From the NCBI GenBank assembly GCA_964035545.1, contig OZ037771.1:13639133-13703132 (forward strand): a DNA stretch of 64,000 nt. The letters run 5' to 3'. The translations under genes and the position numbers were made by a program. Origin of the DNA: Bugula neritina (lineage: Eukaryota; Animalia; Bryozoa). Within the stretch, counting starts at the first letter, position 1, and every line of letters begins with the position of its first letter. Below are positions 1,209 through 48,817 of this stretch, piece after piece. Under the pieces are notes generated by a model, which was given only the letters and a program-made list of their open reading frames with translations, made no database searches and was not told the DNA's origin.

Positions 1209-4200
1209 CTACTGAAGAACTAAAGTTACTGCCTGTTCAAGATGGTCCATCCTTGCTTGTATTATTCTGAAAAGGAAAGTTGAAAAGGTGTTGTCAAAGG
1301 ATGAAATGTAATTGCAGACATTTAGTGCACATTATCATTAAATAAATCAGCATGATATATCAACAATTTTAACCAAACCTACTTTATACAAAATTTCAAT
1401 AGCGTGAAAAGTTCAATTCACATTGAATTAAATCATGTGCTAACAAAATTATTGTTGGAAGTTACAAGAGTTGGGAAAGCTTTTCCCTAATTCATTATAG
1501 CTTTTCATGTATCATCACAGCTATATCAGCTATAATATTATGTTTTTTTCTATACACTCATATTATAGCTAACCTTTTTGACTGCAGGTATAAAAACCCA
1601 ATATTTTCACTTATATTTACACTTGCAACTTGCAACTATGCACTTATAACTTATGATGCGTAACAGTTTTTTCACATTGCTATTTCTTTTTATTTTGGCA
1701 CAATGAATAATTCTATATGCCAAAAACACAACAATTATAATTATGTATTTATAATAATGCATTAATTAGTTGATCCTAATTAAAGTAAAATTCAAAAATA
1801 TCTTTATTTACAAAAATTTAGAAATATTTTGTGAATTAAATTACTTAACATTTGAAATGCAACTTACGGAGGTTGGTGAGAAATGACGTAAATCTCCAGA
1901 GTTTTCATTATTTCAGTCTCATTTATTTTTCTCCTCAGTTTTCGAGAAAGACGATCTGAAATTGTTTGTGTGTTGGAAGGGTATGTTATGTTGGTTGGCC
2001 AATGAAGACTCAAAATACCATCATAACAGGTAAATTCCTGTCCCATATCAGCAGAAACAGTACAATCTGCCAAGAAAATAATATAATATGAATAAAATAT
2101 GTCAAATAAAACACCCCTGAGTGATAGTTGTGAAATTATATAATTATATTTAGTTTGATGTGGTGCATAGAAAATACTTGAAGTTAAAGGCCAGGAGCAA
2201 AATTTAACCTAGGAGCAACAAATCGAATTTTCTTGTTGCAGTCTATGAACGTTTGTGCTGTCAACATTATATGTGTACCATGCAGTTAATTATACAATCA
2301 CCCTTAGTTGATTTTATATAATGTTTAATAAATGTATTTACTCTGGTAAACAACTAACACATCAGAAATATATTTACAGCTAGAGATGATGTCATTACCT
2401 TTTCCACAGATACTTTGAAACTGATGGCTTCTCATCTGCATTATAGACCTCAGCATAAACACTCCATATTCATTCTGATTTATTATGTTGCAATCCATAA
2501 AATACTGAGCATTAAACACCAGTTTTTTTACTTCTGTGAATCCTACAACAGTGAGTTAGTTGGCCTGTTACAGCTGTTGTTTTATACGTTGCAAATTTAT
2601 CACTAAAAAACTATTTGTCCTATTTGTTATAAATATAGTAAATCACGAAAATTCAATTTTGTGTTTACTTTGAAATATTCACGATATTGCAAGTCATATA
2701 AATTAACTAAAAGTATATTGCTACCCATTAGCTATTTTAAATTCTTTTTGTTAAATACATTCACATATATTAATATATAATAATGAGATTATTAGATAAC
2801 GGAATTGTTTTTATACGCTGTTTACTTGTTTTGCTAAATTAGAGTCTATAGGGAAAATAAAATAAAACCAATAATGTATCATAATATGCAGTTATAGAAG
2901 TTATGTTATGCAACAATACGTAGAGCCTATAATATATATTAGCATAAAGCATAATATTAGCTTATGGTAAACAGTATAATAAAAGTACAAATAATATTCA
3001 GTGTTTCGATGTGTGAGTAAGCCCTGTGGTGTAATGGCAAGCCAAAGGTTTGAGGCTCAATTCCCAGCAAGGAAAATGCTATTGTTCTTAATAGAAGGAG
3101 TTGATATAAACTAGTACCTACAAAACATAATGATATACAAAGATCTATACTTACTCTTTACTATAATGTGGTAGATGCACATTATGGAGTTGTGTTCTGT
3201 TATTTGTCGGTAAACACCTTCTGGAAATCTTTTATATCTTCCATCTTCCAGCGGAACTGATACTTTATTGCTGGAAACTGGCAAGTAGTAAGTTTTGTTC
3301 ATGTTTGGACACTCTTCAGGGACACTAGTAGACGTACCGGTACTTCCTGGCAAGTTTTCGCTGCCTGTAATATTAATACAAATAAATATTAGTCAAAAAT
3401 TACCAAACACAATTAGATGATAAGAATTTCATATATGGTCTTATGAATAAAATATAAACGTAAAGTGAAACCAATATATGAAAAAAATTTAAAAAACTGA
3501 AACCAAAGTCTTTTGAGATTTTTGTAAAATATAATTTGAATTGAATCACATGATTTTTTTTAAACATAAACAGAAAGAAAAGATAAAATTAAAAGTTTTT
3601 GGAGCAAAGCAACGTCTTATTTTCTGCTATTTTAGGACTTGCAAATTCTCAGACACTTTATATTAACTTTTGTAAAACAATTTTAAGAAAATTTCAACTA
3701 TAGTTGATTATCCAAACCTTTTTATACAAATAAGTATATTAGCTGACAAAATAAATTGGTAAGTTACTTTAGCAATGACATAGCTAAAGTATTAATAATT
3801 TGTATAACTGTAGCAGTTCACAAAATAGTATATGTCAATAGTTTGCAACCCTCTACTGTTGTAAATGTAAAAATTTCATTTTAACTATATATGAAGCTGT
3901 TTTTACAAAGTTTGAGTTTTTACTTTAATACTAAATTAAATAATTTTCTCAAATAATTTGCACAGCTAATTATTTTGAATAAAATTGCATTCTTTTATAA
4001 TTCAACATCTTCAATCCACATTGAACTTTTCAACAGAGTATTTCAAGTGTAATGACACAATATTAAATATATTACTATAATAAATTTGTTGTTATTAATT
4101 GTTGTTTATTTGTACAACAATAATTATTATTAGACAAATAAGCAAACTTATGCAAACAAATGTCAAGTTTCTACTGTAGAGAAGCTCCAACAAACTATTG

Positions 4201-7200
4201 CATAATCTTTGAATGAGCGCCAATTTAAAAGCTTATCAGGTAATTCAAATAAACAAGCAGAAACTAACCCCAGTTTGGCTAAAATCAATTTAATAAAATC
4301 TAATACTCTGATAGTAAATGTACAGCTCAGTAAGAAATTTGAATAAACATTTTTTGTAAACCCAGCAGTGCTTCATACCTTTGACGGTGACGTAGAACAC
4401 ACAAGCTGCAGATCTGTATGTAGTCTCCAGTCTGTAAAACCCTTCAGGGAGTTCCGCCACATGACCGTCTGTCAACTCTACCTCCACTGTCAGCTGGTCG
4501 GGTAGCAGCATGGTTGTGATGTTCCTGTGGGGGCAGGGTAAGTTGTCACCTACAATGGTAGAACACAACTCCTCATAATGCACACATTTTTTACTAATGG
4601 TGTAGTAAGAGTTTGGTGAAATACACAATATTACATAATGCATTACATAATATATTAGGCATTCATATTTTATAAATAAAGCTGCTTTTAGGTGTCTTTA
4701 CTTTAAAGAGTTTAGTAAAAATTATATTTGCTGGTTGCCTTGCATTGTAAAGCTTACCAATTAAAATTATTATCTTTTGGCCACTGCATCAGCATAATTT
4801 TAGAATACAGCAAAATTAATAAATCACTACACTTTTAGCCTCTAACTATTATTTTGCAGGTTTGACAAGAAAGTGCAAATAAAACTTTTAAATTTTATTA
4901 TTTCAGCTGCCTTTCTCCAGTATTGTAATTTGCTTTAAAGTTCTCAAAAGCATCAGCTATTCATGTATTTTTATTATTCAGTTATAAATTTTAGCAGATT
5001 GGATTTTAATCAAAGTTTAGTAAAGTTATGAAAGAAAAACTATATTTTCACAAAAGTACAAATGCACCTTTAAGGGTTTTAAGATGTGGCCACTTTTGGA
5101 TATGCAGAATGAAGGATAGAAAGACAAATCCAATAAAAAGGATTTTTGAATAATAATAAATTCTAAGAATTTATAACAGCGTCAATCATATTATTAGGTG
5201 TAGGGGAGGGGCATATACTAAAGGTTACCACACAACTTATTTCTGTCTGCTATATAGATGTTATGCAACAAGTACATAAGTCTCTCAGCTTGTAACTAGA
5301 AAATTACAGTAGTTGAGCTCAGAATTTGCGGAGTAGGTTATAAAGGCTACCTAAAGCATCAATGAAAATATTAAAAGGAGAAACAGCTGCAATATTGGCT
5401 GCTCAAACTTACAATTTACGTACACATAAGTTTATTTTATTGGGCGTAATGTAAGCCTCAACTTACCGTGTGTTTCTGATATATGGAGGGCTTGTAGTCA
5501 GAATTATTCTTTATAGTATTTCAAAAAATTATATTTGTCTATTGAATTTAGTTAAATTACATTAATTATAACTTTGCATAAAGTATATTTGTCAATGAAT
5601 CTCAACTTTTCAACTTAATGTTGCACAGTCAAAGTGGTGAGTTTAGACACATCACACAAGCAAATCTAGACAACTATAATAGTGAATTTGATAAAATTAT
5701 ATACTAGTAATTTGGCTATTACTACTTCTGGCTACAAGTAAACAAGAGAATGCAAATCTCAAAATTATTATGGGTTTGGAGATTGGTTGCTGTTAAATGC
5801 CTTATGAATAAAGGCTGGAATGCAGTCATATCCCATAGCTATAAGTGATACCAATTAAAAATATAAATAACTTTTAACACATCACGTACCTGTCAGTTTG
5901 TATATAGAAGTAGTTAGCCCCACATAAATAGCATTGTCAACCACCAAGATGGAATTTGGTGTACTTTGAAATTCACTCCCATCGTAACATTGTATCTCTC
6001 CATAGAAACATACCGGAAGCACTTTTTTACCAGTAGTATCAATCAACCTGAGTCTTCTCTCTCCATAATCAACCACCACAAAAAGGTCCTTTTGAATTGC
6101 TTTGATCTCATTGAGATAGGATAATTCAGCTATCTCAAAATCACCATTCAAATTACCTGGATACGTTTCACCGACTAGCTTCTTGTTGGTGATATTACCA
6201 GTGAAAGACCAGCTGAGTTGAGAAATGTAGTAATAATGATTAGCTACAAGCAGCTGATCTCCTGCCCAGGCCATACCTCTTGGTTGGCTCAAACCAGATT
6301 GTATGATTGTAGTTACAACTCCAGTCTCAATATCTACGGATCTAACGGCATTGTTCGTGTCATCTGTTACCAAAAGCTTTCCTGGATTTCTGGCATCTAA
6401 TAGCAGTTCTCTTGGACCACCAAAGCGAGCAACACCTACTGGTCCATCAGCAAAACCTCTGGAATTATAAGTTCCCGCCAGCAATCGAATGGTTGTAGTA
6501 TTTCTTTCCAGTATTTTTATGCATCCTTTGTCATATTCGGTGATGGCTAGATGGGTTCTGTTAATTTGTGTAAAGCTAGTAGCAAAGATTAACTGAATGA
6601 TGATTTCATTACTTGTGCCGTCTGTGGATATCAGGTGAGGCCACGAACTGACTAAGATACTTCTGCAGTCGTCCTTGAAGAGGTCAACTTCCATATGATC
6701 AACTGCATAGTTCATTGTCGTGTACAAGTTATAATTGTTGAAAGTCACACTGAAATATTTATTCATTATTATGCATTTTCAGATTAATTACTAAGAAAAG
6801 CTTTTTAAAGGTATGTAATATGGTCATTGAAAGAGAAAGCAGGCTTGGTCCAGCGGTTAAAGCACTTACTTGCCTGGCAAACGCAAGGTTAGTGGTTTGA
6901 TTAGTACTATAACAATCATGATACTATACAGGAAGAGCATTCAGACATATTTGCAATGGTAATAAGATTTCATTTGTAATTAAAAAAGAAAATTGGTTTT
7001 TATCTGGGGCATTCACAGGAATGGTGACTATTGTAAAAATTTTGCCCCTGCCAGGATTTGAACCACAGACCTCTGGCTTGCAAACAAGTGTGCTTAACCA
7101 TTACACCACAAGGGCAGCTAGGTTAACTCAGCACTACAACTTTAAAACTGGACAAATTTTTAAAGTATATTGATCATCAAAATGGCTCCAGTTTATTTTA

Positions 7201-8357: not shown

Positions 8358-9350
8358 TTAGGCAGCACACATAATGCTTTTCTGAGCAGCTTGTGACTAA
8401 TCAGCACAAGTTGGTAGCAGCACTAGTAGAATCATTTTCCTTCAGAGTTTTTCTTAGCTGATATTAATCTACAAATAAATATTACATAATAATATATTAT
8501 TATTCTATAGCTTTATGGCCCTGCACATATCTTTTTATATTTTAGATGTTAACTCGCAGATCTAATACAATCATAAGAATTCATTCATGCATGAAAGTTG
8601 TTAACTGACCGTTAAATGGTTACTGCATGGTAAGTTTTAGTTGATGCAAATCTATAAATACAGTAGCATTACATTGATGAGAAGTCACTTTAAAGCAAAA
8701 ATGGCATACTGCAGGTAATAATGGCGCAAGTGGCAAACTAAGTAAAATGGCACGTTTTTAATATTGTAAGGTTTGGGGTAAAAGTTTGGAATCAGGGTTT
8801 GAAGTTTAAAGTTTGAGGGTTTGGGGTTTTGGAAAATTTAGTATCAGTTTTTGATGTTTATTTAATTTCAATTTGTGTCATTATATTACCTGTGTCATTT
8901 TCACCTGTGCAAATTTCACGAGTGCGATTTTTACCTAAAACTGAGTGTACAGCATTTTGTACATAACTTACCATTAAATACTTTAATATAAAGCTGACAC
9001 AAGTAACGGCTTTATAGGAATTGCAGCCATGAATCTTATGGCAGGTTATATTTCAATTTTCAAGTTAATTAAGTACGGGGAAGTGTAAAAAGAACTCAAA
9101 GCTCCAGAATTTTCATTAAGGTAGTGGTGACTGGATATAACTTATCAGTTGGCCAGTGAATAGTTAGCATGTCATTAGTACAGTTGTAGAAAGGAACAAT
9201 ATCAGCAGGTAATTCACAATCTAAATAATAATTATAGAGGACATTGAAAGAGGAATGTAGAAGTCATGTAGGTATTTTGTTTTGTAAGCACTTAAACGGA
9301 GAAGATAATCACATACCTTGAGCACAAATACTCTGTAACTGTTGTTGTTT
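8358..9350 (-). pseudogene. Decayed duplicate of the last three exons (and the intron between the first two) of paralog 2
   Basis: 9317-9350 matches the end of exon 12111-12254 (QQLQSICAQ), and the intron 9221-9316 resembles 12016-12110. 9077-9220 matches exon 11817-12015 but has an internal deletion, an in-frame TGA and a damaged donor. 8358-8468 matches the last exon with a 1-nt deletion (GAGAAA to GGAAA) and a GAG to TAG change. Confidence 0.85.
8697..8937. mobile_element. MITE-like repeat of the GGTAAAATGGCACA family, inside the decayed 3' duplicate
   Basis: CAGGTAATAATGGCGCAA and AGTAAAATGGCAC on the left, TGTGTCATTTTCACCTG on the right, and a GGGTTT-rich centre. Confidence 0.5.
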
Positions 9351-11072: not shown

Positions 11073-11143
11073 GCCTCTGTGGTGTAATGGTAGCACACTT
11101 GCTTGCAAGCCAGAAGACTCGGGTTCGATTCCCAGTGGTGGCA
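11073..11143 (+). mobile_element. tRNA-derived repeat (SINE head or tRNA pseudogene), family A
   Basis: A box TGGTGTAATGG and B box GGTTCGATTCC with imperfect stems. Diverged copies at 7043-7115 (-), 3021-3075 (+, deleted) and ~26180-26212. Confidence 0.6.
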
Positions 11144-11276
11144 ATTATTTTACACTTAAGCATATCCAAGTGTGTGATTAAGATAGTCTCTTAAAATATG
11201 TTACATAAAACTAAAATTTAAAGATTCCAAGAAATTGTAAATGTAACAGACAAAGACCTTGAAAGCAGATGATAAC

Positions 11277-14200
11277 TTATGAGTGGCACGTGTTCATCTG
11301 GGCAACTTTTGACTCATCAGCGCAAGTTGGTAGCAGCACTAGTTGAATCATTTTCTCTTCAGAGTTCTTCTTAGCTGATATTAACCTACAAATACAAATT
11401 ATGTTATGAAATATACAATTATAATGTATTTATAGTCATACAAAGACATTGCTTTGTTCATTATAAGTAAATATAAAGTTTGTTTATTGTCTGCTGAAAA
11501 ACTAATATGTAAATAAAAAACGGCAAAAATTGGAACCTAGCATGCAAATCTAAAAAAACTTCATTTGAAATTTATAACGCTGATAAAAATGCTTTAGCAT
11601 AAATTATAAATAATAATTGTGTGTGATTGTTTAGAAAATTTATATTCATCAGTGCTTAGAAAAATATGTTTTGCTTTGAAACTATGCAAAATGTTTTGAC
11701 TAGATGTTTTTGAGTATAATAGAAATTGTTTGCATGTTTCATTTTGAAGAAAGCCTCAAATTTGAACAAAACTTATCACTGCAGAGATATGTTTGTAAAT
11801 GTCTATGCACACTTACGGAGGAAAGTTGAATGGAATGTACAGCTCAAGACTTTTCAAGATGGCAGACTGGGCAAGTCTTTGGTTGAGTTGATTAGTCAGA
11901 TCAGCTGGAGGTAGAGCAGTGGTGGCTGGATATAACTTATCAGTTGGCCAGTGAACGGTTAGTATGTCATTAGTACAGTTGTAGAAAGGATCAATCTCAG
12001 CAGGTAGTTCACAATCTAAATAAAATTATACAGGGCAGTGTAGGAGGAATGTAGAAGTCATGTAGGTATTTTGTTTGGTAAGCACTTAAACAGAGGAGAT
12101 AATCACATACTTTGAGCACAAATACTCTGTAACTGTTGTTTCCTTTGTTTAAATATAGATCTCAGCATAAGCCTGCTGTAATCATTGAAGTCTACAGCAT
12201 CACATGATGCTTGATAGTCTGTTTTGAATGACAATCTCTTCTGATTCAATGGCGCTAAAAATAAAATCAGAGTTATTATTACTTTGAAATCAATTAAAAA
12301 ATAAAACAATTAAATCACAAAAACTAGATAAGTACATACTAAATGTAATGAAATTAGCAGTAGGCTTTGTATTAAAATCTACAAAGAAAATTGGCATGGA
12401 ACCAGTTGCTAAAAGTTCAAAGTGAGATTGTGACTTAAGGGTAACCACTTACTTTCTACATGAACATGATAAATACAAGTTTTGGAGTTGTATTCTTCCG
12501 CCATTCGGAAAACACCTTCTGGGAAACCTCTCCACACACTTTTACCAGAGATAGTGACATTTACAGCAACTGATAACAGATGGGGTGATCTGAAAGAGGT
12601 GATATTCTTATATGTGCATTCCGGAGCCAAATTAAACCAGGAGTCGTGGTGTTTTGGTTCACTTCCTGTAGTGGAAATTAAAGTCAAGAATCAAAGGGTG
12701 GCTACATAGCATTATACTGTAACCTTAACCAAAACCATCTGAAGATAAGAATAGTGTAGAAAAACATGAGAATGGTAAATTATTTTGCAAGAGAGAGATA
12801 TAACCAGAACATAATTAAAATATTATTTTTTTTAATTTATTTACGTACTCTTACTTAGTTAAAATTTTATCTTAATCTTATTTTTTTGTTTATACTCACT
12901 TTTTACTACAACATGATAAACACACATTTCCAAGTTATACATCTTTTTCATTTTGTAAACTCCCTCAGGAAAATTTACAAAGTAACCGTCCAGTAATTCA
13001 ACTCGTGCTGTGGTTTCGCCAGGAGCCAGAGTGGCACTAATGTTCTTGTAGGGGCATCTTAAGTTGCTCACTAAAAGGAGCAAATGAGCTGTGATAAGCA
13101 AGTATATACGACTATAGACATTGTTCATAGTATAAGCAGTAGGTATAGTATGAGTAGACATCACTGACTTGATCCTAGACCTTACAATAAGTCTAATTTA
13201 AGTATCATTCTAATTCATGCAATAGAGCTCATAAGAAACATATACTTTTAGCGAAATACTATGCAAATTTGCTTTTTTGCCAATTTTGTGTTTTTTGCTG
13301 CAAAATCTTGTTAATAGTATAAAGCCCAAGTAAATTTAAGGCTGATACACAATTGCATATTGTACTATAAAATTTGCGCAGGAGTTATATGAAATAGTTT
13401 AAAACTTACAACTTAATTTGTAAATAGTGTTCTCTGTTCCTACATAAACTTCCTCTTTGATGTTCAGTATAGACAAGAGACCTGATGGAAATAGACTGCT
13501 CGAACCACAAAACTCCTCTCCTTTAAAGCACACAGGGTCAACGACTTGCTTCCTCAAATCTAGTAACTTCAGCTTCTTGTTCCCATAATCTGTGACCAGA
13601 TACAACTTGCCTCGGAAATTTGTCATTTCGTGGAGACTTTGGAATTTAGCTATGTTGAATCCACCATCTTTATCTCCAGCTGATGTTGAGCCAATCCACT
13701 TGTTGCTTCTAACTCCACCAGCTCCATTCCACCAAATCTTGGTTATGTAATGATGGTAATTGGCAACTAGAAGAAAATCTCCGACCCAGATCAGCCCTTG
13801 AGGTCCACTAAATCTGATCTTGTATACTGTCCTGAGCATTCTTGTCTTCAAGTCCACAGATCTTAGTGCATGGTTGTACATATCTGTAACTAAAATTCTT
13901 TCAGGGTTTCTTTTGTCAACCACAACTCCATAAGGATAATTGAATGTTCCATCACCAAAACCTCCATCAGAAAAACCACTGCTGCCGCAAGTTCCTGCCA
14001 GGATATGTGGAACATTATCCTTCCTATTGAGAATTCGAACGCAATGATCATCATGATCAACTAGAACTATGTGAGTTTTGTTGACTTGTGTAAAGCCAGT
14101 GGCAAATATTAAAGTTGATAGAATAGAGGTACTGTAGCCATTTGTGGTGAACAGATGTGGCCATGAGCCAACCAGGAGATGAGTACAGTTGTCATAGTAT

Positions 14201-17200
14201 TTGTCTAACTCCATGTGATCAACAGGGTAGTCTGTGTTCAAGAATTTTTCAAACTTCTGAAAGGAAATTCTAAAACATACAAAGTTACGATGTGTTTATT
14301 TGTTACCAAATATAGCTACAAAGCATGAATAAATAAATAATAAAATATAATTCCAATAGCACAAATGAGAAGGCTAATGGCCAAAGATTGAAAAAACAAT
14401 AAAAGTTTTGAAACACAAGAAATTACATGACTTCAGCTTTTTGAAATCTGCATGAAAAATAAACTAGATATTTTTTAAAATAAAACTTGTTCCAAAATGA
14501 AGTGAGTATAAGCTACAAATTGCCGTTGTGTGTATTCTAAATTCGAAAGTTACAAGAAAATTAAAACAAGTTCTAGGCACCTGGTAAAAAGAGCATGCAG
14601 GTAAAAATGGCACAGGCAATAAGCAATAAACACAGTTAGTTTAAGGTCATTAGTTTCCAGATTCAAGCACTGCTTTATGTTATATATAAACGGTTTCCAG
14701 GGGATAGCTCGAACAGTTTTTGTCTCACGTTAACAAATTTGACATGAAAAGATAGCTCTTGCATTCCTCTTTCATATACTTTTTTAATTTTTCAATAAAA
14801 AATTTTCTGAGAAAGTTGTTGCATAATAAGTAAAATTTTACACCCTCCATGTTCCACTGCTGTAGCACAGGGGATTTATTTTATAAAGTCTAAAAGTTAA
14901 ACTTGACATTCCTTGATATGTTTTCTCTAATATACTTTCTTTGTTTTTTGAAATTCTGTTTATGCTCTTCACAATTTGGTAAAAACATACACCATTTTGC
15001 AAGTTTCACTGCAATTTTCTAAATTCTTCATATGGTGGTTCTAGCTACGCTCCTGTGACTAATTATAACATTCCTAGTACGTTTGCCGCTCTGCGCTATC
15101 ACAATAACATATAGTACCCTCTCGCACAAATTGGCAATCTATTGGATTTCTGCCAATATAATGTTCCCTGTTTTACATTAGCACTTAGCTGAATCATCTC
15201 ACTATGTTACAATAATATATTGAAAATGCCTCAGCACAACATAATTCTTTGTTTGTTTGGCAGAGTTAATTTCAGCTAAATCACTTCACTTTGCAGTCTT
15301 GTCAGTAAAGGTCTGTCTATAGCGCAGCAGGTGTATACTTTCAGTTTCTCTAATTCACATATGATTATTTTAAGTACATTGTATTCTATAAAATCAATTT
15401 AAGGTTTAGTCTAGTGTTCAGTATCTAATTATTATGCATGTATGTTGTCTTACTGTTGAACAAAAGTTAAAAAAAAACTTTACAATTATAGCCATATTTA
15501 TTATACATGCGTAGGATTTGCATAAGTTGACAAAAAAAAATTGCAACAAAACAGGGTTGAACCATGACCAACCAACTTGTCGCTGACGCCTCTAACCTCT
15601 GGACCACGCAGTCATCTTTCAAAGACGCGCACTATTTGAGTCATTATCATTACATAAATATTTCGCGCGCAAATGGGTTATAATTATTAGGCTGTCAATT
15701 CATGTTGATAGCAGTCAAAGCAAATGGTTTTGAACAAATAACCCAAAAGTTTAAAAATAAGTAGCTTGCGTATTACTAGCTACAAAAACAGGTCTGAAAT
15801 AGACTGGTAAAGCAAGCTCTTATTGTAGAGTTTGCAGATGTGCTCTAAAATAAAACTTAAACTGTATGCTATTACATAAGTATTTGTATTCGAGAGATAA
15901 ATGGACATTACTGAGTTTCTGGAAAACAACATACTTGAAGTTAACTTTGACAATGGTGTGTTATTTTCATCATAGCTAGCCTATAGCATAAATCTCTAAT
16001 CATATGAATCTTTATGAAGCCCACAGCTCATGTAAGGGTGGCAATGTAGTTTGAAACTAAAAATTATGTTGCTGCACTGTGTTTATTATATATTATGGAG
16101 CAAAATTTGGTTTTTGTAGCCTACCCAAACACATACTACAATGCAGCTTATATGCTGGCAGCTGTAATAAATACTGCCAATAGCAAGGTTACTATCACTG
16201 CTAGCTCTGTGCAGTATGTAACCTCTTGAATAATTGCGCCAATTTTAAACTCTTGGAAGTTGGCCAAGTTATCATATCGCAGCCAGCCACCGGAGACAAA
16301 GCATCAGAGCTATTCATATAATATTATACTGATGCACTTGGTAGCAGAGTGGCTAATCTAATATAGTTCATAGTTCAACACCCTTTACTTTAGGAATACA
16401 GCCTCTTTTTTTAGGTTTACCTAACAAAGCATGAAAATATCTAAACTGATATTCTGATAATTTAGAGGTACATTTTGAAAACTAGGTTAATTGCACTTGT
16501 TTGCGCAACAACAATAATAAAATAGATATTATGCAGTATAATAAAAACACACATAATACTATATAATATATTATAATGACAATAATATAATATTATAAGT
16601 ACCATTACTGCATTTTATAAATCACATGGTTGCCAAAAAAATGTATCACAAATTTTGTAATTATACATCAAAAATAGAACTAGCTAGGCAGCAGGTTAGA
16701 ATAGAGTAAATTTTTAAAACATGAAATCATGATTTGACTATTGTTTTATTTAGGCCAACCAACCTAGGAACACAAGATTGGGTTTTAGCTGACAGTTTAT
16801 AACATTTAGCTTTTGAGCCAGCAGCACTGGCACTTGTGAAGTATAGGAAAAGTTAGTGAAGCGAGACTAACAAGCACTCAAATACAAGGCATATTGAGAC
16901 ACAATAACAAGTCAGGAGCGTATAAATTGAAAAGAATGTGGAAGGGGGACTATGTTTTTCAACAAGCTATAACTTAAACATGAATTGGCTTTTGAAAAAA
17001 ATAAAAAAGTATATTGGAGAACATAAGTTTCTTTATCTTTTCATATTTTTTTTGTTCCTGTGACATTCAACCTGTTCGAGCTATCAGTGGAACATTGTTC
17101 ATATAGAACATAAAGCACCTGGCAAAGAGCCAGAAAATGAAAAGTATGACCTTAAACCAACTGTGAAGGCACAAATTAAAAAGTAGGTGTATAAAGACTG

Positions 17201-17474
17201 CTCAGGTAAAATAGCACAAAGGGAACCGAAAGTAAATAAATTATGTGTGCTATTTTCACCCAAACGATTTTATTTTAAATCAAAATATTTACCTTGCTTC
17301 AACATCTTTAGTAAACTTCACTCCACAAGCAATAACAGCAAAAACCTACAGCATGTTTTAAAATTAATTATAAACACGATTCAAGAACCAAAAATAAAAG
17401 TGTATTTGATTTAGTTTTTACAAATTTACCTTTGCACCAAACAAATAACTTACCAAAATCTTCCCGAACTTCAT
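11277..17474 (-). CDS. Paralog 2: secreted NHL beta-propeller + 2 HYR-like + Cys-rich C-terminal domain (589 aa). Exons 17454-17474, 17293-17345, 13410-14269, 12900-13070, 12453-12665, 12111-12254, 11817-12015, 11277-11385
   Basis: GT-AG junctions, 1770 nt in frame. Signal MKFGKILVFAVIACGVKFTKDVEA. NHL motif LAGTCGSSGFSDGGFGDGTFNYPYGVVVD. HYR-like CPYKNISATLAPGE...FPEGVY...CVYHVVVK. C-terminus PTCADESKVAQMNTCHS*. Confidence 0.87.
14631..17165. mobile_element. Non-autonomous DNA transposon with ~100-bp imperfect TIRs starting CACAG (CMC-type ends), in intron 2 of paralog 2
   Basis: Left end CACAGTTAGTTTAAGGTCAT...TGCTTTATGTTATATAT...GATAGCTCGAACAG. Right end reverse-complemented CACAGTTGGTTTAAGGTCAT...TGCTTTATGTTCTATAT...GATAGCTCGAACAG. 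Possible AA target duplication. No transposase ORF. Confidence 0.75.
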
Positions 17475-18344: not shown

Positions 18345-22162
<3,818 letters not shown>

Positions 22163-30803: not shown

Positions 30804-31862
30804 TCAATTGCAGGTGTCTGTTTTGGTATCATATATTCTGGACACATCAGCACAAGTGGATTTGAGAAATGCCTGGACAATTTCTCCATCTGAGTTCTGC
30901 ATTGCAACAACCATCCTAAAAATCATAAAAATTACCTGCTGATAGTACAACTATAATAAGCTTATGGTTAATTCTAAGAGTAGCGTTTTTATAATTTGTG
31001 AATAGTTTTGACTTTAAAATCATATGTAAATTCTTTGTCATAACTTACAAAGCTTTTTTATCTAAAGAAGGTTTACAATTTTTGTAGAGCGCATGCACTA
31101 GAACTTAAATGACAACAGAGTAAAATAGAGAAATGTGATTTGTACAGAACTTATAAATATTATAGCTCAACATCAACAATTCATTCAATTATTTAAAAGT
31201 TGAAATAGGTATGTGCCAAAGAATACTCCAACATTTTTTTCTTGCCCCCAAACTTAATAAAATGTTACCAAGAATGAATTAAATAATAATTAAATCTTTA
31301 ATCAAAGTTTTAAAAAAAATATTTTCACCCTTTTCACACCACAAACATTTTTTTATTGTTATTAAAGTTAAAGTTTTTATTAAAGGTAGACAACCTACGG
31401 TAATTTTTTAAGATGGAGATAAATTCCGAGATTTTTCATAAATTGGGAGTTGTTGAGTTTGGTCTGAATTTTACTTATCACAGCTGGAACTTCTGTAATG
31501 TTGGCTGAATACAGCTGGTCAGTGGTCCAGATAGCAGTCAAAACATCACCATCACAGTTATAGATTCGCTCAGAATCAGGAGATGATACGTTACATTCTG
31601 AAATGCCAAGCAGAGAGCATAATTAAGCAGTTGAGTCTCTTATGTAATACTTATGTAATACATTGCACATTCAGATAGATCTAGCTTAGATTCAATTTAA
31701 GATTAAATTAGACTAGTTACATTCTCTCTCTCTCTCTCTCCCAAACACACACACACACACAGACACGCAAACACACACGCACACAAACACATGCACACAC
31801 ACAGACACGCAAACACACACGCACACAAACACATGCACACACACACACAGACACACAAACAG

Positions 31863-31903
<41 letters not shown>

Positions 31904-31920
31904 AACACACACACACGCAC

Positions 31921-31970
<50 letters not shown>

Positions 31971-34844: not shown

Positions 34845-34920
<76 letters not shown>

Positions 34921-34980
34921 GTGCATGTGTGTGTGCGTGTGCGTGTGCGTGTGCGTGTGCGTGTGCGTGTGCGTGTGCGT

Positions 34981-35050
<70 letters not shown>
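34773..35050. repeat. Compound (CA)/(CCCACG)n/(TG)n/(TGCGTG)n microsatellite just upstream of paralog 5
   Basis: Seen directly. Confidence 0.97.
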
Positions 35051-35054
<4 letters not shown>

Positions 35055-36126: not shown

Positions 36127-36270
<144 letters not shown>

Positions 36271-37437: not shown

Positions 37438-40400
37438 TTACGAGCAGGTTCTTTTCTCCGAGTCATACAGTTTCGTCTCATCAGCACAGGTTGTAGTCAA
37501 TACTAACCCAACGTACTCCCCTCTGGAGATTGGTATACCATTAACAACTCTAATAAAATATAAAACATAAACCTAATTGCATGTTGCATGCTTGAAAAAT
37601 TCATTGTATAAACTGTAACAGTTATAAAACAATCAGTTCTATAAAATGCTTACTAAATGACACATGCAAGAACAGTTAATTCCCAATCTACTTGATACTC
37701 AACATAGAGCAATTTTATATGCAGAATAGAAAAAATATATGACCATGCTATAATTATTGAGTTTTTAATCAAATTCCTAGCTAGGTATAAACAAAGTAGT
37801 TTAAAAAAAAATGGTGTCAATATCACCTTTGACCTTCACCTTAAAGCTTCCATTATGGATGTCTGTTTTTCTCCTATATTTTAATCCATGTAATTAAATA
37901 GAGAACATAGATTTTGTAATCTTTATGTAAGATTTTTTATACTTGTAATGTATTTGTTTTCAAGTTATTTTTCATAGATGTAAAAAGCAAAGAAAAACAG
38001 TTTTTAAACTCAATCACCCGCACAAAGTGAAACTAATAATATCTAAAAGGTCAATGTGGGTGTTTGAAATTAAATATCAATACAATATATTGATCTTTTT
38101 TGCAAAAAAATGTGGGTATAATTATTGAAACATATACTAGGTTTCAGTAATGAATTCTAATGATAATTTTGAAAATTGATTTACTACTTATAGAACCAAA
38201 TAATACTTCAGGCCACACCCTTACAATAGGCAACATGGAATTACTATGTTAGACCACATAATAATGACACCCCTTACAATATTAGATAACACAATGGCCA
38301 CGCCCCTACAATAAGCAACATACTGGCGAACAATATGGTTTCTTGTGATTATACTTTAAATATATATTATTATGGTTGCATGACAGATGGATATAGATAT
38401 ATAGAACTATGTGCCTATAAAAAATGTACAGATTTGCACTAGATAATTTCATTTTGAAGTAAATTTCAGATTGCAGGCATTGTAGTTTGTTAGTTTGTTA
38501 CGATAAAGGCCTGGCCTCACACTCTGAAAATCACACGAAATTGTCTATTTGACACGAAAACACAATCGTAGGAGGATTTTTGAGGAAATTCAAACAAAAT
38601 TGTCTTTGTTGAGTGTACACAACGAAGGCGATGGATGAAAAATCACAATAAACGATAAAAACCATTAGATTGGTCAATAGAATTTTAGAAGCAGTAATTA
38701 TTTTATTTCTATCACGTTTCTTTATTTGGCAATTGTCTGCTGTTTGTATTCCGTGAAAGACTCCTTCACGGACCATTTATTATGTGCGTGGCTGGTCATA
38801 ACGAGAGGATAACTCATAAAAATCGTCACACAATTGCGTGGAATTCTCACAAGCGTGAGGCCAGGCCTTTCCATAGGTATGGCAATAGAAATATACAAAC
38901 AAAATGTAAAACATAAATACCAATCATTTTTCACAGTAAGGGGATACAACTTACGGAGGGTTTGCAGAGGGGACGTGAATCCCTAAGCTTTGCATTGTAG
39001 GGGAAAGGTTTAACAGTTTTTTAACTCTCGTTTGTATGGGCATGGGAAGGTGTGAACGCAGGTGAAACAGGTTGTCTGTTGGCCAAAACACGGTTAAAAA
39101 GTTATCGGAGCAAGTGTAGTGTGGTTCCAGATACGTTGAAATCACGCAGTCTACAAAATAATAAACTAAACTATTTTAGTATAAGCTAAATCTAGATAAA
39201 TATTCAACTATAATGATAAAATATTTCTGGACAATGACCTACATCACAGAGCAAATAGTTAAGGGCACCAGATTTAGATTTCAGAAGAAAAGAACTTTAC
39301 AATCAAGCTGCATCTTATTAGCTGCAATGCAAATTTTTTCACAAAATAATTTAATTTCTATTTTAAGCTACAATTTTTATTTTTTAAAGTTTATATTGAA
39401 GATATATAATTGATTATATAATTTGCAGGAAGCGCAATTGTTAGTAATTTTAGGATAACTTTAAAATTTAATTCAAAATAATATATAACAGCATTTTCAT
39501 CATATTATTTTATATATTAACGGATAAATTACTATTATTTTCAAAAATGAGAGCATGCAAGATATTTCTATTGGCACATATTTTGGGATATACTTGTATT
39601 TAAGTTAAAACAAAGCATAATACAAGGATTGTTGCCGTTCACAGCAGCATTACCAAAATATCATATTGAGTAAAATTACTTTAATATAATATTACATATG
39701 CCACAAATAGAAGTCCTATTATCTTCAACAATACCAATCAATTAAAGTTATAGAGCTTAACCAGTGAACATTAAAATCTACACAATAATATATTATTTTT
39801 TATGGATCTTTTAACTATAAAACATTCATTTAATTTTTTATAAGTAAATTATAATTAAATTAAAGAAACTAATTTTTTAAAGAATATTATTATGAACAAA
39901 TTACTACCGTGGGCACAGACGATTTGTATGAGTCGTTTTCGTCTAGACAAGGCGTCTAATAAATGATTTTTAAAAGTTCTTCTTTGGAGATATGAGCATG
40001 GAGCTTGATAAATAGCGTTGAACTCAAGTCTCTTGAGCACAGGAGTTGCTACAAACAGCATAAAACACCTCAGCATAACTTTGCTAGCAAGTACCTTATA
40101 ATCTCGAGTTTGCTCAAGAAATAGAAGTTTGTCAGTAGTTAAGTTAATGCTATCTTAACAACTATAATTACTGCATATCTATATCTGATCATTTAGATAA
40201 ACTAAAAAAGCTCTGTGTGGAGTCATACATTATACAAACACAATTCTATATAGAAACAAGTAATTGCTATACCACAAATTACGTGCTGAAATATAAACTA
40301 TACAATAACTCTTATATATATCAACACTTGCAATATAATTTGTGTTAGTTAGCAATTTCAAGTAACATATTATTGAATAAGTTATTATAAACAAAAGCCT

Positions 40401-41972
40401 TGAGCTTTAGGTTTTGTTACATGTTGAATGCAAGTCATATAACTGTATGCATTACAAAGGTGTAAATGTGTAGATAAGTAACATACTTTTAGTTAGTAAA
40501 TACACTCACAACTATATTTGTAAATGTTTTTCTCCATTCCGAGATAAATTTCTTCTCTTATAATAAGTAAGGAGATTGGAACACGTCCCAGTTTAGTACT
40601 TTTTGTGCAAGGCTCTTCATTAAGCAAGCACACTGGACCAACTTCTCTTTTACTCAAATCTATCAGCTTCAACTTGTAGTTCCTTCTATCTACTACAAGA
40701 TACTTCCTTCGTCCAATTGCTTCAATATCGTGAATAGTACTAAACTCCGCCACATCCAAACTCCCAAGGATGTCGTCAAACCCGGTACGCGAACCAGCAA
40801 ACAGCGTGCTGATGGCCGTTCCATTGCTAAGCCAACTAATGTGATTTATGTAGTGAAAATCAATCACCACTAGAAGTTGCTGGTCTGCCCACCTTAGCCC
40901 GAATGGTCTGTTTGGATATGGGAAGCAAATTACAGTGTTTACTTCTTTTGTAATTAGATCCACGGCTCTCAATGCAGAGTTATCCCGATCAGATATGAAC
41001 AAACGATTTGCATTTTTAATGTCTAATACAACACCGTAAGGATAATAAAATTGATTTCTGCCTAATCTACCTTCTTTATAGCCTCCAACGCCACACCTAC
41101 CCGCTAATACCTGAACAGCATTGGTATCTCTGTGCAACACTTTAACGCAATGTTCAAGGCACTCCACGAAAGCTACTTGAGTGCTGTTAATTTGCGTAAA
41201 ACCAGATAAAAACCTGACATGAGATAAAAGGGTTACAGTCTCTTTTCTATTAGCTGTCTGAAGCTTGTTAGTGGAACTTATCAGAAAGTTCCTGCCTTTT
41301 AAATACTTGTCAATCTCCATGTGATAAACTGGGTCAGTTGTATTGATATGCAACCCCGTGTATAAATAAGACATGCTACAATTATCAAATAAATGTTTCT
41401 ATAATAATATAATATTATAGGTATCAAATATGTATATCAGATAATTCAAACTTCCATGTATTGGGAAATTTTAATAAAAAACAGGTTTTTTGCAATGGTA
41501 GTATATATATGTAACTTTGTTTTATAGATTACCATTTAGATGATATACCATTATTATATAACTAGAAATTTGTATATTCAGTAATTTAGTGTAAGTGTAA
41601 AATATATTTTATTTATATATTTTGGCAAATCATAGGTTAAAAGTTTTAATTAAACTTTTAAATATGTTACTCATTGCATTAATTCAAGTATCTCCTTACA
41701 AAAACCTGTTCTTGCTTTTTGCTACCACAACTATGTTTTTGACTTTTGTGCAAATAAAGTGAAAATATTGAATAAAAGTACAAACCTTGATTTCTGGTTC
41801 CCAATTGCTTCCACCCATGCTGTGAGTTGCAGGGAAACCTGAAGCCAAATATTTAATTTGATTTATAAATCAAAATCTTGGCAAAAGTACATGATATATA
41901 TATACTCACATTATAATACAAGTCATTTTAATTAAGAAAACATACCATAAAGACAAACCATAGAAATCCCAT
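37438..41972 (-). CDS. Paralog 6: secreted NHL beta-propeller + Cys-rich C-terminal domain, no HYR module (464 aa). Exons 41946-41972, 41786-41838, 40510-41375, 39908-40048, 38955-39150, 37438-37549
   Basis: GT-AG junctions, 1395 nt in frame. Signal MGFLWFVFMVSLQLTAWVEA. NHL motif LAGRCGVGGYKEGRLGRNQFYYPYGVVLD. C-terminus TTCADETKLYDSEKRTCS*. Confidence 0.85.
38505..38870. mobile_element. MITE (~365 bp), possibly PIF/Harbinger-like, in the last intron of paralog 6
   Basis: Perfect 16-bp inverted repeat AAAGGCCTGGCCTCAC (38505-38520) / GTGAGGCCAGGCCTTT (38855-38870), with imperfect subterminal extension. Confidence 0.72.
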
Positions 41973-44060
41973 TCTGCTTAGTTTTGACAAGTCAACTTCT
42001 TTGCACTGTATGTAGTGATGTTATACTATACCCTTAGCTCTGCACAATATTTTAAAGGTTTGCACTCTGTAATTTAATTTATGAAAACTTCCAGTAGTTT
42101 AGCTATTGGTGTGAATTACATAAAAACTAAATTCTCCAATAACTATATTTATCTCAGCATGGGTATATGTGACTTTACTCTTTAGTGGTTATGAGTGTAA
42201 ACTTTCTGCTTTTCACAATAACATAATTGTCGTGAAATTTTCTGTAACCTTTTGTTTGACAATAAATAAAACTAAAGCTTTACTGGACAACTATATTATA
42301 ATTATACTAAAATGGCTTAATTGTACTTCTTGCACCTAGAAATATCCACAGGGAGACATTGGCTATTTGTGCCTTTATTTCAGAATTGCATGCTTCATGG
42401 TAAGAAAACCATGGGTATACCCGTAAGAGAATTATAATTAGTAGCTGTAGCCTAACAATAGCTTCAGACATTTAGTACACATTCCTTGAGATTATAGAGT
42501 AACACTATGAGACCCAAACTCAAAATTAGGTATATAGTTATTATTATAATATTAAGACATGAGCTTATATATAGCAGTTAGAGTCTTCATATAATTGTAT
42601 TTCTATGAGTCAATGTCAGCACGTTCAATTTACAGAAAGACGGCAAACATTAATCTGAGAAGTGAAAAATACTGCCAGATTAACCTTTTTTATTTGCTAG
42701 TAAAAATTATACATTATATTATACAATTTTTTTTCATGCAGCAGATGTCACCCAAGGAACAGAGGAAGCTTGGGGAGTTAGATTGTTGGCCTATAGTGAA
42801 CCTGAGGTTATGTTTCCGATTCCCATGGTAAAGGCCAATTGTGATGTTTAGAAGAGCATTCAGTCATAATTGCTCCTGTGCCTCATTTGAATGTAAGTTT
42901 TTAGTTAAATTCAATAGAAGCCCTATCAGGAATATAAGTAGCCAGATGAACTTCTGTATTCAGAAGGCAATTCTGAAGTTATATAATTATTGCAGAGACT
43001 TGAGTATACAAAGAAGCAACCTCAACTTGATTTTATAAATGACTTGTAAAATTTGCTGTCATTGATTATTTTCTGTGTACTCTAAAGCCATATCAACTAT
43101 GTAAGCTTACTAATAATCTGCTGGACAACCAGTATACTTATATAAGCTGTTACGATAAAACATAAGAAGCAATCATCTCAAGTTCGCCAATTTGTTATAG
43201 AATGATTTACACTACAAGCTTTGCTGTGTACAGCTGTTAAACAAGTGTTGTTAATTATAGTCAAATGGGAACAACCTTGTTTCTACTCAACTTGTAATTT
43301 TACTCACAGCTGGGGCATGGTAATGAATATTCTAGCTAAATTTATTAAAGTGCCATTCAGACAAGAGAAGACAACTGGTGCAGAGATTAAACTGAGATCA
43401 ATTCATGGAAAGACTATAATTGAAGGCCTCATTTTATATAGTAATAAATGATTAAATCTATGCGTCCCTTTTTGACAGCATTACACTATAAGTAATCACT
43501 CACATGCATATTGTTGGGGGGTCAATTCAAAACTTAAAAAAGATTAGTAGAGAAGAGAAAATACAGTCATTAACACATGCTTTTGCTTGCAGTAGTAGAA
43601 ATAGAGGAGGTAACTCTAAAGTAGAAAGATACCGATTGCCCATATTCTCTATAATATAGAATATATTATTATAGTAAGTAAATCAGCCATCTATCTACGC
43701 ATTCTAGTTGTCTATAATATAATGAATAAAGTGAAAATTTAAATGTAGGAGTTATGCTATTTAATGAGCTAAATAACGAGAAACTTACTTCTAGGTAGTG
43801 AACAATAATTAACATTAGAAAAAACTGCAACTGCAAAAAAGTAAAATTTTGGAAAGTTTGAAACAGCAAATTGTTGGTTTTGGTGCTAGCTATTACCAGA
43901 CTTATGAGTACGTAGCCTATACACTTTTTGTACTCTGTGAAAGTGCTTTCCGAAATTTCCATGTTATATTATGAAATTTACTCATTTTATTTAATATATT
44001 TTAAAAGAAGAATTTCCTAAAATTTTACTCTAATTATACTAATTCCTATTATCTATACTT

Positions 44061-44431
<371 letters not shown>

Positions 44432-44694
44432 AATATTTTTTTTTATCATCATTATTATGCGAGAAATGTTATGCATACACGGTGGTTATAACATGTGTAT
44501 ATATGTCATATAATAAATAAAGCACTACGATATTACTTATTTTACATATTATATAACTTGAAATCAAGAATTTTACAAACTCTACAGTTATGTAGAGAGT
44601 ATATCTTATAGCCAATTTACAATAACTATTAAATAGCACACCAACTGCATTAATTGTGCATTATAGCTAGCCACCACTTAATATTGTTGTTATT

Positions 44695-46100: not shown

Positions 46101-46678
46101 TGTGGCCTTATATATATGTTTGTTCAATTTTAAATAAAAAACGTGCAGGTAAAAATAGGATAAGTAATAATGGCCAAATGTAAATGTACACTAGGTACAA
46201 GAGCCAACTAATGTTGATTTTATGCTCATCAAAACTCCAAACTCAAGCATGTATACGGACTCAAACCCTAAACCCAATTTTAATGGGAATATTTTGTGTT
46301 TATCAACTCAATCTAGCTTTGTGTTCGTATGTAGGCATATCTGCTGTAAACAAAATTGTTAATACTTATATAGATTTTCACTCTAATACACATACTATCA
46401 CATCTTAAGTTTTTCTGCTAACAGCAGTTCATACACTTGGCAATTTATTCTAAAAGTGTTGAAGAACAAAACAATTTTCAACTGCAAAATCAAACTTTTA
46501 ATCAGAAACATTTCAACACACAAAGTTAATAAATCACATAGAATTAGAAATTCATGATTATAGTCGATTTAGATGTAAGCTATCAAGGCTTAGCAATCCA
46601 GTTCCATGTAGCTTGTGGTAGCTTTTAGTTAGACGACAAACAATGTGAATGTGTCTTTGCTGCTGATTGGTCAGCAAT

Positions 46679-48817
46679 CTAGGTACATTCGTCCTTGACA
46701 GCATCATAAGTTTGAGTCTCATCAGCACAGGTTGAATTAAGAATCACTTCTGCAACTTCTCCCTTTGAGTTCTTCTTAGCAGCAACTACTCTGCATGTTA
46801 GTAAGATAATAAGCAATAAATCCACCTTATCTTTTTTTAGATTAAGCCACAATATTTGTAGAAAATAAAATAATCAATAAAAAGTATAAATGATTATATG
46901 TAATATAATTATCAAAAACTGTACAAGTTTCATGTTATTTGTATTTGAAATTGTTATAAATCTAACAATTTTTAGATATCCAGATTAATATCTTCTTTTT
47001 TAAGTTCTGTATTTAATTATCAGAGTTCTGAACTAAATTTTTAAATGTGAATCGCAGAATATCTTGAATTACTAAAAGTTTTAAAAATTGCTTTAAGAAT
47101 ATATCAGACTCACGGTGGTTGGTGAGAAAGAATAAAAATCTCCAAAGTTCTCAGTGCCCCTGACTGATTTAGCTTCTTTTTCAGTTCGTCATTCAACACT
47201 GCAGGAGGTTCCAAGATGGCGGCAGAATACAGCTCATCAGTTGGCCAGTAGACAGTTAAGAGATCATTGGTACAGTCATAGAATGGTTCAAGTGTGGCAG
47301 ACATCTTGCAATCTAAACAATTCAAAGAATGAGGTCACTATATATACTATATTATAATGCCATAATATTGCAGTAGTTTACAGAATAGCAACTCACATTA
47401 TACTAACGTTTGTATCATTCACCTTAACCTAACTATAGCTTAACTTATAGCCAAGCGGCAGTTAATTTAAAAAGACCCCTATGTAGTTTAGAATATATGC
47501 GCGATGGCACGGGGCTATAGTTTAGACCACATGCATGCAAGGTCTATATACTTGTACTTTCTGCTTTAAATCATTGCATTTTTTTACTTCCTTTACTTAT
47601 AATTATAGTAAGTTTTAAGTAAACTACCAAAGAACTTATAAAATGCATAGAGTCAAAGCACAAGTTTTCAAGTAAGCAAGTAATTTTCAAATTTTTTGCA
47701 TAAATATTAGCAATTACTAACAATTCATTTTTTTCATAAAATGTTGCATGCTATATTATAGACTCTCAAGTTTTAATAGACCAGTCAGGTAAATTTGAGG
47801 ATGTATTTTCAATATGAAATTTCAAAGTTGAGCCAAAACCTCAAGTTGATTACAAAGATATATCAATTATTCACAGCATGCGGCACTGACAATAAATTAT
47901 AGCATATGACAGTATGTGTAGGGCTATAGTTGAGCCACATTGGAAGTGGGGCGAGCTGAATCATGCAAGCACAATTTGGCAAACTAATTTATTTCACTGT
48001 TTTTATTTTAATTGGACACACTAATTTCTACACTTAATTAGTCTATATACTTTTTAACTGAATTTTTCTGCCATCAATATACAATATATATCCAAACCTA
48101 CATTTAGTTTAAAGACAAATCAAATTAATTGTTATATAAGTGCATTAATATTAGACTGTTTTGAAAACTTTCTCAGAATGGTGCAAAACTAGAGATAGGA
48201 ACAGTTAAAAGGAAAAAAGCTTAACTATTATACCTTATGGCAAAACAAGGCAGTGGCAAATACCTCAAAAGAAAACTGGCTCTATCTTAATAAGGAAAAA
48301 GTTTCTGCAACTAATCTCAATGAACAAAAACAGCAACAAATGACTGACTTTTAAAGAACTTTAAGATGAATGGCAAAGAGTTTTTTCCCCACCTATAATT
48401 TAATTTTTGGCTCACCTATATAACTCAACTCGTCACTATTTTTAATATTATAAAACAAGAAGATGCTCCTATACAAATTTTTATTTCGCTATTTTCAGGT
48501 ACACACCTTAAAAACTAAAAACTTTGAACTCTATCAAACAGAAAATTTCATTAGCCTCTTTACAATAGAACCTTTCCTTGCAGCAGTTAATCTAATAAAA
48601 TAAAGAGTCCATGCAATAACAGAAAATATAACAATACTTCAGAAAGATAACATTAAATAGTACACAAAATACTCACTACCAGCACAGATCCTTTGAATTT
48701 GATCTCTCCTGTGAGTCAATGTAGATCTCAGTACAGCTCTGCTAACATTACTATTGAGTAAGTCACATGACACGTCATACTCTGCTTTGAATGTCAATCT
48801 TCTCACTACTTTAGACT
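46679..48817 (-). CDS. Paralog 7, partial: three intact exons of the Cys-rich C-terminal domain (48677-48817, 47114-47312, 46679-46790); 5' exons not found in this window
   Basis: Same 141/199/112-nt exon sizes and phases as the other paralogs. Translations SKVVRRLTFKAEYDVSC...ICAG, CKMSATLEPFYDC...SHQPP and VVAAKKNSKGEV...STCADETQTYDAVKDECT*, with no disabling mutations. Confidence 0.78.

Follow-up and report, generated by a model that had tools for sequence, protein, structure and literature searches.

A tandemly expanded gene family of Bugula neritina predicted to encode secreted NHL-propeller proteins, with divergence of young paralogues concentrated on one propeller face

Bugula neritina is a colonial marine bryozoan (moss animal). 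On the minus strand of a 64,000-nt stretch of its chromosome 7 (positions 13,639,133–13,703,132; hereafter the window, with coordinates counted from its first base), six open reading frames (ORFs) of 280–331 amino acids (aa) are clear paralogues, with 31–42% identity to the first, and the locus raises the question of what these genes encode and why a genome should hold so many diverged copies. We found that each ORF is one exon of a multi-exon gene, that this exon encodes a predicted six-bladed NHL propeller, and that nonsynonymous divergence among young paralogues is concentrated on one face of the propeller. With a probability of roughly 0.6, we read the genes as a diversified family of secreted recognition proteins, which would form a germline-encoded set of proteins that bind ligands outside the cell.

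When all open frames of at least 25 aa were compared with one another, four further exon families (H, B, C and D) emerged on the same strand; they follow every propeller exon in an unvarying order on its downstream side. The exon sets recovered in this way were six propeller exons (~290 aa), seven H, seven B, eight C and seven D-type pieces, the last (~112 nt) being six D exons and a fragment at 8435–8512. The comparison thereby bore out the proposal of a first-pass annotation of this DNA that six spliceable genes and two partial copies lie on the minus strand; arranged head to tail, they are six complete genes (G1–G6), one propeller-less 3' copy (G7) and one fragment. The genes follow a common plan of exons of 21–30 nt, 53 nt and 854–866 nt (propeller), zero to two H exons of 159–213 nt, and then B (141/144 nt), C (196–202 nt) and D (106–112 nt), with 2, 2, 1, 1, 1 and 0 H exons in G1 to G6, respectively. 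An AG acceptor and a GT donor were present at every exon, with almost one unique solution per exon, in the phases 0,2,1,[1],[1],1,2 that had been proposed. The window exons were joined only in silico, for a check of frame, stops and hydropathy; all six spliced models were open, in frame and terminated by a stop, and hydropathy detected no transmembrane-like stretch beyond residue 25 in any of them, in line with the earlier claim that a transmembrane segment is absent.

The junctions could be compared with RNA. In the mapped region 11200–17199, the exons of G2 alone were covered by Logan contigs of four RNA-type studies, and single contigs of 1.3–2.1 kb connected the G2 propeller through to D at the predicted sites (13410/13070, ~12900/~12665, 12453/~12254, 12111/12015 and 11817/~11385). 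These contigs, which differed from the window by ~6% in exons, extended 84–115 bases 5' of the propeller exon, and the last 30 of these bases matched exactly positions 17292–17321 in the 53-nt exon; the signal exon of G2 sits ~3 kb upstream of its propeller exon. Exon 1 of G2 consists of an ATG plus six codons and ends in phase 0, and together with the 53-nt exon it encodes MKFGKILVFAVIACGVKF..., which by its residues would be a typical signal peptide. Equivalent small 5' exon pairs were located for G3, G4 and G5. Of the signal-like N-termini ascribed to all six genes, that of G2 was thus confirmed by RNA and those of G3–G5 are backed by exon pairs, whereas those of G1 and G6 are tentative. 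Whole-protein searches and folding were done with P0019, the 520-aa product of a 1925-nt Logan contig, in which a continuous frame runs from the signal peptide and the propeller through a single H module to the B-C-D tail; its orthologue lies in the genome at C7:14,594,888 and is 92% identical.

In the AlphaFold model of P0019 (22-row alignment), the product of the ~860-nt exon is predicted as a six-bladed NHL propeller with a predicted local distance difference test score (pLDDT) of >95 for residues 40–320. The model has 24–25 strands in six four-stranded blades, with an N-terminal strand closing blade 6. Foldseek matched the P0019 propeller to the NHL propellers of TRIM71, Brat, PknD and NHLRC2 at E values of ~1e-11, and also to the SOQ1 lumenal domain and Bacteroides BT_3476. 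A family profile matched the NHL domains of SOQ1 (4e-20) and NHLRC2 (5e-17), within a range of 4e-20 to 1e-11 that includes TRIM71, as well as 36,880 library proteins at E≤0.001, most of them giant multi-NHL proteins. SOQ1, NHLRC2 and TRIM71 are the closest relatives of solved structure. The NHL identity of the head, as first proposed, is supported by the model and by both kinds of search; the Pfam NHL model (PF01436) exceeded its gathering cut-off in G2 only (26.6 vs 20 bits) and was weak or absent in the other genes. The sequon Q(I/V/L)N-x-(S/T), said to be kept in all six propellers of the window, was indeed present in 6/6, and in the model this conserved N-glycan site (Q-x-N-x-S/T) would lie in an A-B loop on the face opposite to the variable one described below. 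The invariant propeller columns were D, F, Q, C, R, G, P and L. A TRIM-NHL identity was considered and ruled out, as only the signal exons of 21–30 nt and 53 nt precede the propeller, and P0019 has 35 residues before it.

Between sibling lineages, the ratio of nonsynonymous to synonymous substitution (dN/dS, or omega) of orthologous propeller exons was 0.10 for G2, 0.13 for G1 (against contig L006) and 0.44 for G5. Flanking non-coding DNA of the window differed from sibling-lineage genomic contigs by 8–19% (intron p 0.17–0.19), and dS between the lineages was 0.21–0.25. This divergence agrees with the cryptic species known within the B. neritina complex (PMC11480708).

For an analysis of paralogues, another 40 propeller exons were retrieved from the genome. 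Young paralogues showed whole-exon dN/dS values of 0.6–1.46 and no stop codons. Nonsynonymous divergence in the D-A and B-C loops, which by the four-stranded-meander topology share one face, conventionally the 'top' ligand-binding face, was 2.7–2.95 times that of the rest of the propeller in two independent young clades, and 0/5000 label permutations reached this ratio. Per-site variability was correlated between the two clades (rho 0.41, p 2e-12), and all 22 shared hotspots were in or immediately beside these loops, in all six blades. In seven phylogenetically independent sister pairs from these two clades, omega of the variable face was 1.57 (p 0.006, one-sided against neutrality), that of the rest of the propeller 0.57 (p 5e-5), and that of the C exon of the same gene pairs 0.39 (p 6e-5). 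Estimates for the non-variable part of the propeller ranged from 0.45 to 0.57 and were significantly below 1. The hypervariability of one face together with the constraint on the tail is a new result of this analysis, and the recognition function suggested by the first-pass annotation gains support from it. Relatives of solved structure bind through their top face, which is rich in loops; this is established for RNA binding by Brat and TRIM71.

From these observations we infer the following scheme. The proteins would be secreted, glycosylated and disulfide-bonded, with a cleavable signal peptide encoded on two small exons; the propeller, encoded by one exon, would be followed by zero to at least four HYR-like spacers (the H modules) and then by a conserved 145-residue six-cysteine tail. 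Tandem duplication would enlarge the family, and after duplication the D-A and B-C loops in each of the six blades would evolve faster than neutral, with the propeller scaffold, the opposite face carrying the N-glycan and the C-terminal domain remaining constrained. Established genes would be conserved between sibling lineages, as at least two of the three compared are, G5 less so. Ligands would differ from one propeller face to the next; the invariant tail would serve a purpose common to all members, for example anchoring, assembly or effector contact.

Several points weigh against this scheme. The RNA check covered G2 alone among the window genes, and the signal exons are uncertain in two of the six (G1 and G6). 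Sites were classed by strand order in the predicted model of one member, not by coordinates, and the omega estimates ignore gene conversion and recombination among tandem copies. The role given to the tail is pure inference, as this domain has no predicted fold. When two older pairs were added, omega of the face over all nine sister pairs was 1.12 and not significantly >1; therefore, relaxed constraint on surface loops is the main alternative to positive selection. The contrast between the face and the rest of the propeller persisted in the nine pairs (odds ratio 2.8, p 5e-9).

Relaxed constraint is central to the rival that survives best, which we nevertheless regard as unlikely, namely a structural or adhesive role in a matrix, such as that of the cuticle, the cystid wall or the glue of attaching larvae. 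Propeller and tail would then build a material, and the loops would vary for lack of constraint on exposed positions. Secreted, glycosylated, cysteine-bonded and modular proteins with a variable number of spacers would suit such a role, and the face omega in the nine pairs was ~1, not clearly higher. However, the variability is restricted to one face, 22 of the variable positions are shared by the two independent clades, and the rate in young clades is above neutral; moreover, matrix proteins rarely keep >100 intact and highly diverged paralogues (median pairwise identity among propeller paralogues, 47%).

An allorecognition function, in which the linked diversified loci would be labels or receptors governing colony fusion or rejection, was judged improbable. 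A large, tandem and diversified array with a variable face and a conserved tail would be expected of such a system in a colonial animal. It is disfavoured because the lineages conserve these genes and the four RNA data sets share a near-identical G2 allele; the divergence observed is at the level of flanking non-coding DNA between cryptic species, with dN/dS of 0.10–0.13, rather than the extreme allelic polymorphism usual for allorecognition genes.

We consider it slightly less probable still that the paralogues are enzymes with different substrates. Some six-bladed propellers of the NHL/SGL type are lyases or lactonases (PAL, virginiamycin B lyase and SMP-30), and virginiamycin B lyase and an SMP-30/gluconolactonase-like protein were among the Foldseek matches. 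Alignment and model topology, however, revealed no conserved histidine, acidic or metal-binding cluster among the invariant or near-invariant propeller columns, and the nearest sequence relatives are non-catalytic NHL domains. Enzymatic function is disfavoured because the face that holds the active site in such enzymes is the most variable part here and lacks conserved catalytic residues. Finally, that the array consists mostly of decaying, neutrally evolving duplicates with no current function is strongly disfavoured, in spite of the whole-exon dN/dS near 1 among young paralogues and of one propeller-less copy and one fragment in the window, because frames are intact (~90 stop-free full-length propeller exons and six open window models), constraint is present in the non-variable part and in the orthologues, and spliced transcripts exist for G2 and the P0019 gene.

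Returning to the recognition reading, a more specific version can be offered only tentatively and appears doubtful as it stands: the >100 secreted NHL-propeller proteins, binding through the hypervariable face and anchoring or contacting effectors through the six-cysteine domain, might be the main system by which bryozoans recognise microbes, including their bryostatin-producing symbiont, or foreign tissue. B. neritina depends on a defensive bacterial symbiont, and we know of no described non-self recognition molecules in bryozoans.

The C-terminal domain comprises ~145 residues with six conserved cysteines and is encoded by the three exons B, C and D. Searches of Pfam, of PDB sequences and of 5.8 billion proteins detected no relatives (a region-restricted search of the last returned the query alone), and all its feature neighbours in the ESM Atlas were below 0.8, at noise level. 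For the SEA domain (PF01390), considered as a candidate, there was no Pfam match, an Atlas cluster at 0.76 (noise level) and one partial SEA exon in the genome. In the P0019 model the C-terminal 200 residues had a pLDDT of <50, and MAFFT had stacked the B, C, D and H exon fragments on one another; the fold is without a prediction because these fragments could not be aligned to a single full-length sequence. An intron-free copy with a contiguous tail, searched for at C9:7.88 Mb, was not found. From the residue pattern, an alpha/beta fold may be guessed.

The H module is a single phase-1 exon, and its model, built from 31 exon-wise sequences, is a predicted 56-residue five-strand beta-sandwich (pLDDT 91) whose two cysteines are conserved in all 31 modules. 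The claim that an N-x-S/T site occurs in every such module held for 7/7 H exons of the window. Among the top three matches by shape in the ESM Atlas, two were HYR-bearing clusters, one of Sushi+HYR+cEGF proteins and one labelled 'HYR domain-containing' (template-modelling scores of 0.76 and 0.71, with the aligned region within these proteins not shown). Matches in the PDB were generic Ig/PKD folds (Z 3.6–5.1), and Foldseek against the PDB returned KRAS-type noise only. The Pfam HYR model (PF02494) did not match four H exons or P0019 even at E≤10, whereas it detected three true HYR exons elsewhere in the genome, and hhalign of eight H modules against these three HYR domains aligned 23 C-terminal columns with a probability of 16% (E 0.0016). 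The HYR label given to these exons therefore stands in part: the predicted fold is nearest to HYR-bearing proteins, but membership in HYR is unproven, and we call the module HYR-like and shortened.

Both recognised parts have known counterparts. With proteins of the NHLRC2/SOQ1-lumenal type, and with TRIM71, Brat and the PknD sensor, the Bugula family shares the repeat motif and the six-bladed fold. It lacks the thioredoxin, RING/B-box/coiled-coil, kinase or filamin partner domains of these relatives, and differs from them in placing the propeller after a signal peptide, with conserved cysteines and an N-glycan site, ahead of HYR-like modules and a new tail, and in having >100 paralogues with a fast-evolving face. 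Like H, the HYR modules of hyalin, SVEP1 and SRPX-type extracellular proteins are each encoded by one phase-1 exon and have a pair of conserved cysteines; the all-beta sandwich predicted for H would be a further likeness, and the C-terminal motif of H, G-x-[YH]-x...C-x-[YF]-x-V-x-V, aligns with the true HYR domains of the genome; H modules have ~52–70 residues against ~81 in HYR. The Bacteroides surface proteins BT_3476 (3tc9) and 3hrp, among the top Foldseek matches, likewise have both a six-bladed NHL propeller and an Ig-like module outside the cell. In these bacterial lipoproteins, however, the Ig-like module comes first (the reverse order) and there is no six-cysteine tail, and the similarity is limited to the NHL repeats (E 6e-7 to 2.5e-6).

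By analogy, the family may be likened to invertebrate recognition proteins with a variable head and a constant tail, such as snail FREPs, amphioxus and Ciona VCBPs and bivalve C1qDC proteins, which are likewise large lineage-specific tandem expansions of secreted multi-domain proteins and in which, as seems to be the case here, change is accelerated in the presumed binding domain and a second domain is conserved. The folds concerned (Ig, fibrinogen, C1q and chitin-binding) are unrelated to the NHL propeller, the HYR-like module and the new domain.

Nothing relevant was found in the literature searched on bryozoan or Bugula NHL proteins or on secreted NHL expansions, and NHL goes unmentioned in two genome papers on B. 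neritina. One public member alone has a name: KAF6040527.1, the cluster mate of one homologue, is annotated as 'hypothetical protein EB796_001164 [Bugula neritina]', and its gene model stops after the B exon. No named family with this architecture was encountered, as had been anticipated. NHL propellers are mostly familiar as modules that bind RNA or protein inside cells and as sensor domains of bacteria. If the recognition reading is true, a new scaffold would join the few that animals have expanded to recognise ligands outside the cell, and bryozoans would have their first concrete candidates for molecules of immunity, symbiont handling and settlement; in the more specific version, the family would do on an NHL basis what FREPs, VCBPs or VLRs do elsewhere. 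The family also defines a C-terminal domain with no detectable relatives and a shortened HYR-like module, and it is directly testable because genes, splicing and candidate binding residues are now defined.

The genome searched comprised 216,009,554 bases in 321 pieces; for the B. neritina assembly tzBugNeri2.1, a size of 216.00 Mb in nine chromosomes has been published (PMC11480708). It contained at least 137 propeller exons, ~90 of them full length and stop-free, together with 86 C exons and 52 H exons that share the same clusters, in agreement with the claim of a lineage-specific expanded family. The main clusters were on chromosome 7 (13.37–14.67 Mb) and chromosome 2 (24–33 Mb), and each C and H exon lay downstream of a propeller exon. 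A member at C7:13634603-13638420, 0.7–4.5 kb before the window start, carries four consecutive H modules between propeller and tail, and the number of H modules is therefore given as zero to at least four. On chromosome 8 (7.66–8.73 Mb), ~45 further propeller exons with 21–30% identity to those of the window form a cluster of their own with no C- or H-exon match nearby, and they may belong to a sister family whose tail is different.

Within the window, all genes are on the minus strand, and exon borders were set by splice sites and phases, with RNA-type contigs supporting the G2 junctions from the propeller to D. G1 (1607–6940) has a tentative 5' exon at 6940–6870 (71 nt), the propeller at 6749–5890, two H exons (4549–4379 and 3364–3155), B at 2542–2399, C at 2066–1868 and D at 1712–1607, giving an open model of 586 aa; its last exon had been placed near 1209, which is incorrect. 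The 5' exon of G1 is uncertain because a tRNA-like short interspersed element (SINE) sequence adjoins it. The JGI contig L006, aligned with 5891–6748, holds the sibling-lineage orthologue of the G1 propeller exon. The alignment contains 11 gap columns, and the called product has another ending (...VFCHIQTDR), the result of either a frameshift in that lineage or an assembly error.

The two partial copies do exist, with corrected limits: a propeller-less B-C-D unit at 48817–46679 (G7) and a G2-like fragment at 8435–9346. The fragment retains the 5' half of a C exon (~9220–9099) and the start of a D exon (~8468–8435); its stretch 9123–9346 is 92% identical to 11918–12140 in the 3' part of G2, and it has neither a propeller exon nor a complete exon set. 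G2 itself (11277–17474) consists of exon 1 (17474–17454), the 53-nt signal exon (17345–17293), the propeller (14269–13410), H1 (13070–12900), H2 (12665–12453), B (12254–12111), C (12015–11817) and D (11385–11277), and its open model of 589 aa begins with MKFGKILVFAVIACGV....

G3 (18345–22162) comprises exon 1 at 22162–22133, exon 2 at 22034–21982, the propeller at 21305–20440, H at 20100–19900, B at 19460–19320, C at 19010–18812 and D at 18456–18345; the model is open, has 533 aa and starts with MALRWKATALTLLCLAWMV. The corresponding exons of G4 (25931–29697; open model of 514 aa) are 29697–29674, 29563–29511, 28831–27978 (propeller), 27560–27402 (H), 27288–27148 (B), 26703–26502 (C) and 26042–25931 (D), with B and C falling in one open frame of 282 aa because a (TG)n microsatellite fills the intron between them without a stop. 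For G5 (30804–34640; open model of 518 aa) they are 34640–34611, 34512–34460, 33699–32837 (propeller), 32542–32384 (H), 32258–32118 (B), 31597–31399 (C) and 30915–30804 (D); P0001, encoded on a metagenome contig from JGI, shares 93% identity with the G5 propeller exon.

G6 (37438–43830) has no H exon. Its tentative 53-nt signal exon lies at 43830–43778, followed by the propeller (41375–40510), B (40048–39908), C (39150–38955) and D (37549–37438), and the model is open from the 53-nt exon onward; the donor of this exon is weak, and a search for exon 1 of G6 was negative. G7 (46679–48817) is reduced to B at 48817–48677, C at 47312–47114 and D at 46790–46679. Its C exon is 77–88% identical to the C exons of a young chromosome-7 clade. 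No propeller or H exon was found upstream of G7 within the window, and the genome-wide propeller search was empty for window positions 41375–64000. Some 6–7 kb past the window end, at C7:13708762-13710179, a propeller exon with its own H exon is split between two matches that overlap but differ in frame, probably through a frameshift. This copy may be a pseudogene or else the head that G7, ~21 kb away, has lost.

Repeats and mobile elements surround these genes. A ~2.5-kb element with nested terminal inverted repeats and no long ORF occupies 14631–17165 in intron 2 of G2. Its 27-nt arms (CACAGTTAGTTTAAGG...; 14631–14657 and 17139–17165) are 85% complementary, and many contigs, at very high summed depth and often starting at 14629–14631, map to it; it is probably a high-copy non-autonomous DNA transposon. 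A tRNA-like sequence at 7040–7110 (T-loop GGTTCAAATCC) lies just upstream of the tentative G1 5' exon, and ARAGORN called an odd 'tRNA-???' at 11073–11143. Both are probably tRNA-derived SINE copies, the first of which may have supplied or disrupted the G1 signal exon. In the gene-poor stretch upstream of G7, short broken minus-strand ORFs at 59400–61850 resemble the C-terminal part of ORF2 of a non-LTR (long terminal repeat) retrotransposon (...NTWAVTAVHYTARILD) and look like a decayed copy of a long interspersed element. Long (GT)n, (AC)n and (TA)n microsatellites occur in introns and spacers of the family at 19568–19706, 26745–27133, 31745–32006, 34847–35050, 36128–36268 and 44064–44436.

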